This document shows, piece by piece, positions 47,701-50,119 of a DNA stretch of 64,000 nucleotides. The notes below the pieces were generated by a model. That model was not told where the DNA came from. It ran no database searches and saw only the letters and a list, made by a program, of their open reading frames with translations. Position 1 is the first letter of the stretch; every line of letters starts with the position of its first letter. Where the stretch lies: sequence record PV261924.1; one strand, 5' to 3'. Both the position numbers and the translations under genes were made by a program.

Positions 47701-49693
47701 GAAGTCTACCGTCATTTGAAATGACTCTAATCGATTCACCTTGAATGAACTGGTGGTCTTCTGTAAAGGTAAATGTAGAGTTTGTGATACTATTACCAGT
47801 TGATACATTTCTACCAACCCTGGCCATTTTTGATCCTGTTGCCTTCTTGGTAGCATATGCAGTGTTGTCCATGACAACTCTTGCTCTGAATACTTCAGGT
47901 GTACCACTTACAGGAATGACAACATTAATATTTTCTGTTTTCTTTGAACCAAATCTATAACCCTGAATTGTCGTATTAGGTGCCTCATCAGGATTGGTGA
48001 AGTTATAAAGATAAAGTCTTGAAGTATCTCCAACAGATGTTGTCTTTGTTACATCGATAGATGAGAACTCTACTGTTGCAATTTCTGGCTTAAGTGCCTT
48101 TGGTGGGATAATTTGAGTAATGTAACCAACATCATCCTGTGAGAATACATTATTCTTATATCCTCTTGAAGTCAGAGCAATCTGACCAAAGTTGGAGTTT
48201 GAGTTTGTGACAGAAAAATCACCACCAGACTCAGCTAAGAATTGATTTGAATATCCAATTGCGAAAATGGATACCAATTGCATGAATCCATTATTGGATA
48301 CCTTAATGTGATAGTTTGAATACTCTGGTTTATATACAGCATCAATGTCAGTGTGTAAATTAGGAATAGTGGTTGAATCATCAAACGAGCCACTATTTTG
48401 ATTATACTTGACAAATGCGTTGTCATCAACTTGAAGACCTACACCAGTATATTGTGCAGCAACCATGGATTTGAAACCCGTTGCCTTACTACCATCGGCA
48501 TGCATACCACACATACCAAAAATAGATCTCAATGACACATTGAAGATATAGGGAGATGCAGAAGTAACAGTATCAGTAGAAAGAACTACACTTGTACCAG
48601 TTGGGTTAGGAAGTGCGTCACCTGGAGCTACAGGAACTTCATACTTAAATCCTGTAACACCAATTTCATTAGTAGAGGTGATTTCTGTGACAAGATAAGT
48701 ACCGTTATATCTCTTATCGGTTACATCATTAATGATAACGTTAGTATCAACATTAAGACCAATGATCGCATTTGACAATTTAACATCAATGACAGAAGTT
48801 GGTGTGACACCATCACCTGCCTTGATACTGTTGATACCTACTTCACCAGAGACAGGTCCAACAATTCTATATTCATCAATTCTTGGTTCAATATCTACAT
48901 TCGCACTTGGATAATCAGGTTCAATCTCTCTTCCACTTGCTGGACCATATACAATACCAATCTTCTCATAATACATATCCAAATCAGTACGGTCTGTTGA
49001 ATATGAAATAAAGTCGTCATTGATATTGACTTTATTATTACCGTCCGCATATTCAAAAACAGTCAGTTTGTGGTGTGAAAATGTTGGTTTGAATTTGTTT
49101 GTCGTATAATCTTTATATGCTGGTTTTTGTGGATCAGCATCTTTGATAGTACAACTGTTCAGATAACAACCACCAGTTACTCTTAAGATTGCTGAGGGTT
49201 CAATTGCATTATTTTCAGGGTTTGGAACATAAATCGGACGAATCACACATTTTCTAAGATCCTGTCCAACAACAGATACACCACGAGGCATAATAACACC
49301 ACCATGGATACTATTCAGTTTATAGAGAATATTGTTGGTATCAAAGATATCGAAGTTTGATGTGTTACTAAAAGCAGTAAAATCAGAAGAAGTTATACCA
49401 TTCCTCTGTAGAAACGTATTTCCTCCAGTCGGAATCCAACCAGGTCTATTATCAATGTGGTGGACACCTGGTGACAAATAAATTGTAGTCTTTTCAAACC
49501 TATCATTATCTTTACCTTTCTGATAGGAGAACCTTGATGCCTCTACCAGAGCTCTTTGAATGGTTTTGAATGGACGTGCAAGAGAATTACCTTGGTTCTC
49601 TACCCCATCAGTTGCATCCAAATTGTTTGGATCAACATACAGAATATTTCCCTTAACGTTCTTCAGAAAATTATCTAAGCGAGATAATGGCAT
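44792..49693 (-). CDS. large virion structural/tail protein, 1633 aa
   Basis: MPLSRLDNFLKN..GNILYV.PN...PFKTIQRAL, beta-helix-like; typical of T4-like cyanophages. Confidence 0.8.
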   Translation of the reverse strand: MPLSRLDNFLKNVKGNILYVDPNNLDATDGVENQGNSLARPFKTIQRALVEASRFSYQKGKDNDRFEKTTIYLSPGVHHIDNRPGWIPTGGNTFLQRNGITSSDFTAFSNTSNFDIFDTNNILYKLNSIHGGVIMPRGVSVVGQDLRKCVIRPIYVPNPENNAIEPSAILRVTGGCYLNSCTIKDADPQKPAYKDYTTNKFKPTFSHHKLTVFEYADGNNKVNINDDFISYSTDRTDLDMYYEKIGIVYGPASGREIEPDYPSANVDIEPRIDEYRIVGPVSGEVGINSIKAGDGVTPTSVIDVKLSNAIIGLNVDTNVIINDVTDKRYNGTYLVTEITSTNEIGVTGFKYEVPVAPGDALPNPTGTSVVLSTDTVTSASPYIFNVSLRSIFGMCGMHADGSKATGFKSMVAAQYTGVGLQVDDNAFVKYNQNSGSFDDSTTIPNLHTDIDAVYKPEYSNYHIKVSNNGFMQLVSIFAIGYSNQFLAESGGDFSVTNSNSNFGQIALTSRGYKNNVFSQDDVGYITQIIPPKALKPEIATVEFSSIDVTKTTSVGDTSRLYLYNFTNPDEAPNTTIQGYRFGSKKTENINVVIPVSGTPEVFRARVVMDNTAYATKKATGSKMARVGRNVSTGNSITNSTFTFTEDHQFIQGESIRVISNDGRLPDGLESNKVYFSIVDGLGGNQLQLAQSFNDSLSGNKISINNLGDTLIVESRVGDKDAGDVGHPVQYDTTERQWYVNVSSASTENNLYAKVVGGGLGDATPRSYITRLKDTRQSADRIHKVRFVIPSSTGSDSARPPLDGYVIQQSSDVTSTSNTEIALNFNPGSVTMSNDAQMRNFSFIANVDYRSGLAFYTTEKPHGLSIGSTVEINNVTSTLFPTVGVGNSGFNGTYEVTGISSARTFSVNQIRSSPGTFTNNTSQRTTALPTVKRKKFSKDFYVYNVETINDYKNGEQDGIYYLSVLNADVKPSVAPFNVEEYAFSQPVGNLYPQLDRDNPKSTATSAACYAIPSNIGETVINNPTNSITGETLEELFSDSGVGAGITDIVSNNVGTAYTIFTDTDHGCNRITRAVIDNPGAGYGDGSSTIQYYYNATLENLGAGSLGRNATALVTVDGTSTGEIIDIAVMDGGTAFVEGDTFRVVGIATTTGFSAATGSVNKIYDNRNDTIRIAGINDYDGRAYNSLYRVTSIPGIKEIEVEPLAPVSPGITTVGLGNNICAPAAFSVIGPAYDTSNFVYNKDVGLATVTTDYANNFRVNNSVVISGAAQTFYNGSFVCVDKIGLTTVVLQVGVNTVTPATGGTIRLHSGGIRNNFGDLVVGNGRLHGRETPIYAGITTTLSAAITSKTTDTINVSNMTDFGFLIGDYIQVNDEIMRIKTTVSRTSGVTQLKVFRGVYGSIADTHVSGSVVQRILFYPIEFRRNSLIRASAHTFEYLGYGPGNYSTAFPDKQTKQLTLDQQITAQSQSTSGGVVNYTGMNDRGDFFIGNKRIASNTGREQVYDTPVQTICGEDPYTVGSTNDVSDFNFVDSSVVKIERNVVVDGGDKSNILSEFNGPVQFTKKVVSTSSEGIEANNIFIQGNAQVSRKITVGIATPSDAGNPGDIVYNANPASGGTVGWVYTTNNEWKTFGTISS

Positions 49694-49734
49694 CTGTCTT
49701 GCACACGATATCTATTATTAGATATTTATTACAT

Positions 49735-49759
49735 AAAAAAACCACCCAGAGGGTGGTTG
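49735..49759 (-). terminator. intrinsic terminator
   Basis: AACCACCC-TCT-GGGTGGTT followed by a T tract. Confidence 0.8.
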
Positions 49760-49790
49760 ATTAGCAACAGAGTGCTTCCTTCACACGGCT
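49735..49790 (-). ncRNA. candidate small RNA, about 55 nt
   Basis: consensus promoter and terminator enclose an ORF-less, foldable sequence. Confidence 0.55.
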
Positions 49791-49795
49791 CTAAT

Positions 49796-49824
49796 ATTAT
49801 AACACTAGATCATATCATTGTCAA
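49796..49824 (-). promoter_or_regulatory. perfect consensus sigma70 promoter
   Basis: TTGACA (49819-49824), 17 bp, TG-T-TATAAT (49796-49801). Confidence 0.85.
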
Positions 49825-50119
49825 GTAGATACTCTACTGTGTTAGCAACATCATTCATCGCATCACGAAGTTCTTCTCGATTTCCACTCTCCATAATCTT
49901 GAGATTTTCGTCAGAAGTGAGTGTCCATCTCCATTCCTCCATATCGTTGGAATACCAGAAATTGACTTTCATGTGTTTTGTGTAGTGACTACTTTCACAC
50001 CGAAAATACAATCTAAGTTGTATTTCCTTCTCATCATTATATATCTGGGGTTCAGGAGTCTTGTAAGGATTTCTGGATTTGACATATATTTTGTCGTATT
50101 TGGTTGGTGTAAGTGGCAT
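49805..50119 (-). CDS. hypothetical protein (true start possibly internal)
   Basis: ORF track; C-terminal MKVNFWYSNDMEEWRWTL... is the most protein-like part. Confidence 0.6.
   Translation of the reverse strand: MPLTPTKYDKIYVKSRNPYKTPEPQIYNDEKEIQLRLYFRCESSHYTKHMKVNFWYSNDMEEWRWTLTSDENLKIMESGNREELRDAMNDVANTVEYLLDNDMI

Follow-up and report, generated by a model that had tools for sequence, protein, structure and literature searches.

Synechococcus phage RN05-S probably directs an antisense RNA at one of its host's tRNAs, to judge from the sequence of one short intergenic locus and its many relatives. The 5′ segment of the RNA predicted there, which we call the anti-tRNA box (CCGUGUGAAGGAAG; 49775..49788, minus strand), is a perfect reverse complement of nucleotides 26-39 of tRNA-Val(CAC). 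On balance we favor reading the locus as the gene of a trans-acting anti-tRNA small RNA (sRNA) of about 57 nt, one that derives from an inverted, truncated tRNA-Val(CAC) gene and disables that tRNA. The module is widespread in abundant marine cyanophages and offers an easily testable hypothesis for a conserved intergenic element. No antisense RNA of a phage against a tRNA turned up in our literature searches, and to our knowledge one directed against a host tRNA is undescribed. The sRNA is phage-encoded, terminator-ended and seed-bearing, and the class of target that its seed points to appears to be unprecedented.

Architecture of the RN05-S locus

Promoter, RNA, terminator and a following late promoter all lie on the minus strand of the sequence that we studied, the first 64 kb of the phage genome (PV261924.1; host Synechococcus sp. 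MW02), hereafter the window. The −35 hexamer TTGACA (49819..49824, minus strand) falls inside the last codons (L-D-N) of a 104-aa open reading frame (ORF) and is kept in the phages Bellamy and S-SM2. A spacer of 17 nt separates it from the TATAAT of an extended −10, TGtTATAAT (49796..49804, minus strand; TG at 49804-49803, TATAAT at 49801-49796). An earlier note on the window, made from its letters alone, had called this its best promoter, and the search agrees: it is the only perfect TTGACA-N16-18-TATAAT in the 64 kb and, as TTGACA-N17-TGnTATAAT, the sole 12/12 match with a TG among 34 promoter-like sites between 44 and 54 kb. The whole 206.5-kb genome holds six perfect promoters, all on the minus (coding) strand, where about 0.1 per window and 0.3 per genome would be expected by chance, as estimated from the GC content of 39.6%.

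The promoter is predicted to drive only a short RNA. With +1 placed from the position of the −10 (A49790 or G49789) and the 3′ end within the U run, the sRNA would be about 57 nt long (49734..49790, minus strand), close to the 55 nt or so given in the earlier note. The strong terminator reported there about 30 nt past the start is likewise found at that distance from the expected +1. This intrinsic terminator (49735..49758, minus strand) has an 8-bp stem with five G-C pairs (AACCACCC/GGGUGGUU, at 49758-49740), a UCU loop and a U run; the T7 run occupies 49741-49735, and its first two T are paired within the stem. The RNA also lacks an ORF, as had been stated: none of at least 30 aa lies on the minus strand between 49805 and 49693. 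Short GUG and UUG frames within the sRNA vary in frame and length among relatives and are not conserved, which led us to reject a micro-ORF or leaderless peptide at the locus.

The neighborhood has the minus-strand order tRNA-Leu(UAA), 104-aa ORF, sRNA, AATAAATA and tail-fiber gene. The tRNA-Leu(UAA) gene (50259-50176, minus strand) is about 350 nt upstream of the sRNA, so that the earlier description of the RNA as adjoining a tRNA gene is only roughly right; the two are separated by the 104-aa ORF (50119-49805, minus strand), whose final codons contain the −35 and a portion of the spacer. Downstream and outside the RNA is the late-promoter-like AATAAATA (49723..49730, minus strand), a constant neighbor of the module, which here would serve a tail-fiber gene of 1633 aa that starts with the ATG at 49693 (minus strand). 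We take the (C/A/T)TAAATA motif to be a T4-type late promoter.

The fold of the sRNA is unremarkable in energy and leaves its 5′ region mostly unpaired. Its fold energy has z = −1.37, and 19 of 200 shuffles were equally good. The minimum-free-energy fold contains a small internal hairpin, AGCA-CUCUGU-UGCU (49763..49776, minus strand), an antisense remnant of a D arm. It does not contain the fold proposed earlier, UUAG/CUAA with AGAG-GUG/CAC-UCU around a purine loop, which is also unconserved and includes a UUAG that lies upstream of the likely +1. An Rfam search, one of the checks that the earlier note had suggested, assigned the sRNA to no family: at the gathering score tRNA-Leu alone matches in the whole window, and at E values up to 10 the sRNA draws just terminator-driven, sub-threshold matches (Yfr10, GadY, RNAI). 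Taken as sequence, the locus looks like a true, independently expressed non-coding sRNA gene and not like a chance pairing of promoter and terminator.

A module shared by T4-like cyanophages

The module is conserved well beyond RN05-S. The close relatives S-B43, RB11-B and S-B05 carry an identical element, and its order is shared by the distant phages Bellamy and S-SM2 (about 68% identity over the region), which read tRNA-Leu, ORF, tRNA-Thr, ORF, promoter, short RNA, terminator, ATAAATA, fiber. Between these two phages and RN05-S a 12-nt block, GTGTGAAGGAAG, is unchanged, and the terminator stem has been swapped for an unrelated, still paired sequence. Using the fiber N-terminus as an anchor, we retrieved 63 IMG/VR loci and examined 61 upstream regions (58 IMG/VR loci plus RN05-S, Bellamy and S-SM2). 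The module is present in 44 of the 61, in 29 unique versions, every one of them with an unchanged GUGUGAA core. In P-TIM68 and some contigs the late promoter stands alone, without the sRNA module; P-RSM4, a phage of Prochlorococcus MIT9303, has only a terminator at the homologous site, without the box.

A wider search uncovered a family that extends past the fiber locus. The pattern CCGTGTGAAGGA-N15-45-T6 matched at least 120 IMG/VR contigs. A hairpin stands ahead of the T run in 117 of the 120 pattern matches listed, and a (C/A/T)TAAATA late-type promoter follows no more than 25 nt past the U run in 103 of the 117 members among the matches listed. The isolates Bellamy, S-SM2, Syn30, S-RIM2 and S-CAM9 carry the module. 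The conservation in other cyanophages that the earlier note proposed to look for thus reaches more than 100 IMG/VR contigs as well as these isolates. Its candidate sRNA gene gains accordingly, being a module conserved in many T4-like cyanophages whose promoter keeps a constant spacing to the conserved 5′ end of the RNA.

The surroundings of the module vary far more than the module does. It ends just upstream of a late promoter, yet the late genes behind that promoter differ between phages: fiber, a MDYKPYSPEWHRKRY protein, a Q-I-x-N-R-N-F-L-S-P protein (annotated as a tail completion protein in S-CAM9), a 2OG-Fe(II) oxygenase and others. In numerous phages it is gp23, the major capsid gene, whose stop codon immediately precedes the box. 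Terminators of relatives occupy the same place with unrelated sequence, their stems changing yet keeping their pairing. The box is single copy, found once in the 206.5-kb RN05-S genome and once per locus in 1.24 Mb of cyanophage DNA.

Antisense match to the anticodon arm of tRNA-Val(CAC)

The conserved 5′ end of the sRNA is an exact antisense of the tRNA-Val(CAC) anticodon arm; the view of the earlier note, in which the RNA exposes a purine-rich loop and could target host mRNAs or sponge an RNA-binding protein, is not supported. The tRNA reads ...GCGCA-CUUCC-UUCACAC-GGAAG-GGGUC..., with CACUUCCUUCACACGGAAGG as the anticodon-arm complement of the box. Nucleotides 26-39 begin one position ahead of the anticodon stem and take in its 5′ arm CUUCC, the loop UUCACAC and, from the 3′ arm, GG. 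Extended to CCGUGUGAAGGAAG(UG), the box is perfect antisense of nucleotides 24-40, which run from the end of the D stem through the 5′ arm and the anticodon loop to two bases of the 3′ arm.

Bacterial genomes point to the same tRNA. We scanned the pattern CCGTGTGAAGGAAG-N14-44-T6 over 185,579 bacterial genomes, one per species, and obtained 74 matches, 50 of them within a tRNA-Val(CAC) gene on the opposite strand. These 50 span Cyanobacteria (Moorena, Nodosilinea, Leptolyngbya, Gloeobacterales), Gardnerella, Bacteroidetes and Synergistetes. The remaining matches fall mostly in unrelated coding or intergenic DNA, with one truncated tRNA-Val remnant (L264), and two matches of the scan are cyanophage contigs mis-binned into metagenome-assembled genomes. 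The gene neighbors of tRNA-Val(CAC) are conserved only inside one Leptolyngbya/Nodosilinea-like group.

The strength of the match lies in the family. The tRNA-Val(CAC) sequences from the scan match the RN05-S genome best at 49774-49788, and in RN05-S alone that match is 14-15 nt long, with E of about 0.01-0.04 for one genome; being so short, it leaves the antisense case dependent on the whole family. In 92 unique family members the perfect complement runs without a break for 12-20 nt, with a median of 16.5 nt, the 12-nt minimum being guaranteed by the ascertainment pattern itself. From the conservation of the tRNA-Val(CAC) arm in other cyanobacteria and other phyla, we infer that the arm in marine Synechococcus (MW02, WH8109, WH7803) matches the box as well.

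The sRNA gene most likely derives from a tRNA-Val(CAC) gene that was inverted and truncated inside the phage tRNA cluster. Read on the plus strand, 49759..49788 resembles a degenerate 5′ half of such a gene, both in a local alignment to nucleotides 4-39 of the cyanobacterial tRNA and in a multiple alignment; its parts correspond to the 5′ strand of the acceptor, a reduced D arm, and the 5′ arm and loop of the anticodon arm. This origin is suggested by the longer fiber-linked forms, RN05-S among them, whose antisense alignment covers tRNA positions 1-40 and in which GGUUGAUUAGC is the counterpart of the acceptor strand and the first part of the D arm. ARAGORN and Rfam found no tRNA gene at 49733-49800, and a plus-strand tRNA gene or pseudogene with a full cloverleaf is ruled out, since only nucleotides 1-40 align. 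The short, general form of the module consists of the anticodon-arm complement alone, beside the terminator.

The box exists in two forms that share only the complement of the anticodon loop. Form A, which includes RN05-S, reads TATAAT-N9-GTGTGAAGGA(A/C/T)G and pairs with the loop and the 5′ arm. Form B reads TATAAT-N14-GTGTGAATTAGTG, with CCTTCC ahead, and its ACCUUCCGUGUGAA covers in antisense the loop and the 3′ arm and goes on to the first base of the variable loop. Some fiber-linked A forms (GGACG and GGAUG variants) have just 12 contiguous complementary bases. The two forms are the halves of a virtual hairpin, CUUCC-GUGUGAA-GGAAG: form A is without the 3′ arm of the anticodon stem, form B is without the 5′ arm, and what they have in common is the invariant complement of the seven loop bases. 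They are found with identical terminators and flanks. An anticodon hairpin cannot form from either, on either strand, so that a sense-strand decoy or a decaying pseudogene does not account for the pattern. The alternation suggests that selection favors pairing over tRNA-like shape.

Past the box, both forms usually carry a small hairpin, then (T)AATCAA, ahead of the terminator. The stem of this hairpin beside CAC/GUG varies among relatives between G-C, C-G, U-A and G-U with pairing maintained (GCAC/GUGC, CCAC/GUGG, UCAC/GUGA, AGCAC/GUGUU), in a regular-expression count that took in 11 sequences and with MAFFT alignments that are rough across the variable terminators.

As predicted from the sequences, the 5′ end of the RNA always sits at the start of complementarity, no matter if a sigma-70 promoter, a late promoter or the 3′ end of tRNA-Thr determines it. 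A sigma-70-type −10 is located 6-9 nt from the box in 46 of 86 contexts. Among the 46 family members with a TAnnnT −10, 34 have an extended TG, and a −35 matching at least 4 of 6 positions accompanies 27 of the 46 sigma-70-type contexts, compared with 3 of 46 shuffled controls. The distance from −10 to GUGUGAA is 6 nt in the Bellamy form, 9 nt in form A and 14 nt in form B; the predicted +1 falls 0-2 nt ahead of the first complementary base in all three, which would put the seed at the extreme, unpaired 5′ end of the RNA. In other members a late-type TATAAATA or CTAAATA replaces the sigma-70 promoter at an equal distance, and in Syn30, S-RIM2 and S-CAM9 the sRNA stands behind a late-type (C/T)ATAAATA promoter. 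In 12 contigs, six of them checked with ARAGORN, the box begins 1-2 nt past the 3′ end of tRNA-Thr(UGU), so that 3′ processing of the tRNA would yield the same RNA 5′ end.

Timing is less uniform. The early expression supposed in the earlier note suits the promoter type of RN05-S only and fails for the versions linked to tRNA-Thr or, in the three isolates just named, to late promoters. Together with the copies that follow gp23, the late-promoter versions imply that the sRNA is not always early.

Alternative readings, possible mode of action and known relatives

Two alternatives explain the tRNA-like segment without RNA pairing. The segment may be a trapped, inverted tRNA-Val fragment whose hairpin is merely a terminator or insulator between early/tRNA and late transcription, the box being retained for a reason unrelated to the tRNA, such as a processing or protein-binding site in a 3′ untranslated region (UTR). 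The terminator does also stop the upstream tRNA-Leu/ORF unit, the box often directly follows a gp23 stop or a tRNA and so is 3′ UTR too, and 103 of 117 members among the matches listed have a late promoter behind them. We nevertheless hold this reading to be unlikely: GUGUGAA is invariant and 12-20 nt of perfect complement persist in more than 90 unique sequences despite freely diverging terminators and flanks; the way in which forms A and B alternate about the loop complement suggests pairing; and the promoter moves together with the start of complementarity. P-RSM4 and P-TIM68, moreover, retain the terminator and/or the late promoter without a box, so the box is not needed for termination. 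It is highly improbable, in our estimate, that the tRNA-identical segment acts at the DNA level, be it as a site of recombination, an att-like or homing site, or a mobile regulatory cassette by which gene modules are shuffled. In favor of this, phage att sites are frequently copies of tRNA genes, the module is located at variable gene junctions, and the A and B forms are swapped between otherwise near-identical flanks. Such sites, however, usually copy the 3′ end of a tRNA, whereas this segment copies the 5′ half and the anticodon arm; no integrase lies near the locus in this lytic T4-like genome, and a strand-specific promoter and a U-run terminator are conserved around the box. The PeSL cassettes of T4-type phages are also units of promoter and stem-loop at gene junctions, but they are multi-copy and their stem-loop precedes the promoter. 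The sRNA module occurs once in 206.5 kb, with the promoter first, and its single copy rules out a multicopy repeat or PeSL-type cassette.

Two further alternatives keep the pairing and change its partner or its purpose. An ordinary trans-acting sRNA could use a purine-rich 5′ end to pair with host mRNAs or sRNAs or to mimic a Shine-Dalgarno sequence, with the CU-rich Yfr1/Yfr10 motif ACUCCUCACAC (which Yfr2 targets) or the 3′ end of 16S rRNA as target. The box resembles the Yfr2 5′ motif of Synechocystis primers (GGUGUGAGGAA; PMC2662882), can pair with Yfr1 at −13.7 kcal/mol with two bulged A (PMC2190773), and forms 9 of 10 pairs with CACCUCCUUU. These RNAduplex energies, however, are no better than those of shuffled boxes (p of about 0.11 for Yfr1 and 0.26 for the anti-Shine-Dalgarno), the GGAAG part is wholly missing from form B, no Yfr2 match appears in Rfam, and the match to tRNA-Val(CAC) is longer and perfect. 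Energies at the level of shuffled boxes and an unsuited form B led us to drop the Yfr1/Yfr10 sponge, the Yfr2 mimic and the Shine-Dalgarno mimic alike. Nor does the phage genome hold a complementary site with fewer than 4 mismatches, which rules out a target within RN05-S itself, and we rate an ordinary sRNA as quite unlikely. The likeness to the Yfr2 family, a conserved unpaired 5′ motif (GUGUGAGGAA versus GUGUGAAGGAA), is better explained by the tRNA complement; the sRNA is without the central 12-nt loop on a long stem and gives no Yfr2/Cyano-1 covariance match in Rfam at E up to 10. Very unlikely, in our judgment, is a cis-acting tRNA sensor, a minimal T-box-like nascent leader that binds the tRNA-Val anticodon and modulates read-through to the late gene. 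The order promoter-leader-terminator-gene suits such a sensor, as does a leader that has the cognate GUG within an extended anticodon complement just upstream of the terminator. Against it, the module has neither a conserved antiterminator nor an NCCA-binding element; the members' terminators have unrelated sequences, which excludes a conserved alternative pairing; a late promoter of their own serves the downstream genes, which also differ between phages; and Rfam gives no T-box match. T-box leaders do recognize a specific tRNA through its anticodon loop, as the box with its cognate GUG codon appears to, but the pairing here would cover the whole 7-nt loop, reach into the stem and probably act in trans by sequestering the tRNA, not by sensing its charge. 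We found in the sRNA no Stem I platform, T-box sequence, antiterminator or T-box match in Rfam, and no conserved sequence between the box and the variable terminators.

An antisense RNA of this design could disable tRNA-Val(CAC) by invading its anticodon arm. GUGUGAA would nucleate on the seven exposed bases of the anticodon loop, after which one arm of the stem would be invaded. The resulting duplex of 14-20 bp would remove the tRNA from decoding; because the anticodon is an identity element for valyl-tRNA synthetase (ValRS), it would probably block charging too, and it might flag the tRNA for a double-strand RNase. Computed energies favor these steps, at −64.6 kcal/mol for the cofold of sRNA and tRNA versus −43.0 for the two apart, and −27.1 for the seed duplex versus −4.1 for the anticodon hairpin, values that take no account of modified bases, of bound proteins or of the tertiary structure of the tRNA. 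The tight fold of mature tRNAs, their modifications, their abundance and the proteins that bind most of them count against invasion by the sRNA.

What the phage would gain is a more tentative matter. It is possible, though we remain doubtful, that Synechococcus T4-like cyanophages carry a dedicated anti-tRNA RNA that disables host tRNA-Val(CAC) by sequestration or guided cleavage, the phage supplying tRNA-Val(UAC), as a form of codon-biased shut-off or reallocation. Forms A and B would then be two solutions for invading one hairpin. In RN05-S, at 39.6% GC, GUG makes up 9.7% of Val codons, and the phage's own tRNA-Val is UAC, with an anticodon arm that has 4 mismatches to the box over 16 positions. 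Cyanophage loci totaling 1.3 Mb hold 89 phage tRNAs, of which 77 carry U34 and read A-ending codons and none is tRNA-Val(CAC). On the host side, some marine picocyanobacteria have a tRNA-Val(CAC) gene and others do not (PMC3152331), the GC-rich Synechococcus CB0101 has high GUG use (PMC9964418), and infection of Synechococcus WH5701 by Syn9 is decided by tRNA supply (PMC11726456). With a GUG-poor phage that has its own tRNA-Val(UAC) and a host that prefers GUG, disabling tRNA-Val(CAC) would favor phage messages. Its loss would shift decoding capacity from host to phage messages and would free ValRS and valine for the isoacceptors that the phage uses. This codon-logic step is the weakest and least secure part of the explanation, and the late-promoter and post-gp23 versions fit poorly with a purely early host shut-off.

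Codon-biased shut-off, if true, would be categorically new biology. Phages add tRNAs, and hosts destroy tRNAs by protein nucleases; the antisense switching-off of one host tRNA would be a new route of translation takeover, a new class of sRNA target and a natural template for programmable tRNA knock-down. The idea links to the evidence that tRNA supply decides the outcome of Synechococcus-phage infection (PMC11726456).

Known phage sRNAs share the layout of the module and differ in their targets. Like DicF, IpeX and StxS/lambda 6S (PR′-tR′), it combines a strong phage promoter, an intrinsic terminator tens of nucleotides on and a single-stranded seed, and it is placed upstream of late genes. 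Unlike theirs, its apparent target is a mature host tRNA, not an mRNA, and its seed is a perfect complement of 12-20 nt at the extreme 5′ end. The late genes here have their own T4-type late promoter, so that the lambdoid antitermination logic probably does not apply; gp55/gp33-type factors are also annotated. Among RNA motifs of phages and cyanophages, the reviews that we consulted name only CfrI, wcaG, manA, glnA, PhotoRC-II and abiF and no anti-tRNA RNA, and none of these six gives an Rfam covariance match at the sRNA.

Parallels also exist outside the phage sRNAs. The primer-binding sites of retroviruses and retrotransposons, and the A-rich loop of HIV-1 with tRNA-Lys3, are likewise viral RNA with perfect antisense to a host tRNA, and their annealing shares the need for partial unfolding of the tRNA. 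Retroviral RNAs target the tRNA 3′ end to prime reverse transcription, whereas the sRNA matches the anticodon arm and 5′ half, with no reverse transcriptase involved. The small stable RNAs C and D of T4, encoded in its tRNA cluster and co-processed with phage tRNAs, resemble the sRNA in being small and co-located with phage tRNAs; they are longer and are not known to us to be antisense to any tRNA. The nearest thematic relatives are the tRNA sets of cyanophages. That of Syn9 (Leu-UAA, Thr-UGU, Arg-UCU, Val-UAC and others) supplements AT-rich codons (PMC3152331, PMC11726456). The sRNA is located in a tRNA cluster and would serve the same theme of fitting the host decoding pool to phage codon usage, but where those sets add tRNAs, it would subtract the host isoacceptor that reads a GC-rich codon.

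Promoters and sequences flanking the predicted sRNA

Perfect TTGACA-N16-18-TATAAT promoters are strongly over-represented in the RN05-S genome. Six are present (206165, 149363, 134935, 110918, 88314 and 49824, all on the minus strand), a count about 20 times that expected by chance. All six lie on the coding strand, and three carry an extended TG. These six are probably the strongest early promoters of RN05-S.

The region upstream of the sRNA is occupied by a hypothetical 104-aa ORF (window 49805-50119, minus strand) between the tRNA-Leu and sRNA genes, and its final codons double as the sRNA -35 box. The C-terminal stretch of this ORF, EELRDAMNDVANTVEYLLDN, shows strong nucleotide-level conservation in Bellamy, S-SM2, S-SCSM2R, S-SRM01 and S-CREM1. 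In S-CREM1, wcaG, manA and abiF RNA motifs lie immediately upstream of the match. On the other side, 3' of the sRNA terminator, the late promoter and fibre 5' UTR form a block, ATGTAATAAATATCTAATAATAGATAT (window 49694-49734, minus strand), that is nearly invariant in many fibre-linked contigs, although terminators vary among those same contigs.

Distribution of the module

The complete cyanophage module occurs in two contigs assigned to bacterial metagenome-assembled genomes (MAGs), one Rhodopirellula (L228, NZVD01000078.1) and one Sphingobacterium (L234, CAZOLA010000022.1). Both contain a -10 or TATAAATA element, the anti-Val box, the terminator and the late promoter, and L228 additionally carries the MDYKPYSPEWH gene. 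Each appears to be a cyanophage contig that was wrongly binned with an unrelated MAG.

The anti-Val box is absent at the homologous junctions of two Prochlorococcus phages, P-RSM4 (L267 235-290) and P-TIM68 (L006 1480-1536). The P-RSM4 junction retains the terminator and late promoter, and the P-TIM68 junction the late promoter alone. Absence of the box in these two inspected cases hints that distribution may be linked to the host.

tRNA-like sequences and annotations

A Pseudanabaenaceae MAG contig (L264) matches tRNA-Val(CAC) at about 1520-1600 in the T arm and anticodon arm only, diverging beyond them, and ARAGORN called no tRNA there. This segment may be a truncated tRNA or an integration-site remnant. 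Within RN05-S, ARAGORN called a tRNA-Ile with anticodon UAU at 108161-108234 (L190 44161-44234), an unusual isoacceptor reading AUA that fits an AT-rich codon supplement. The deposited annotation of RB11-B (L004, PV261925.1 209905-210127) includes a 223-nt 'tRNA-Leu' reaching the genome end, which is probably an artefact of annotating the end of the linear sequence.
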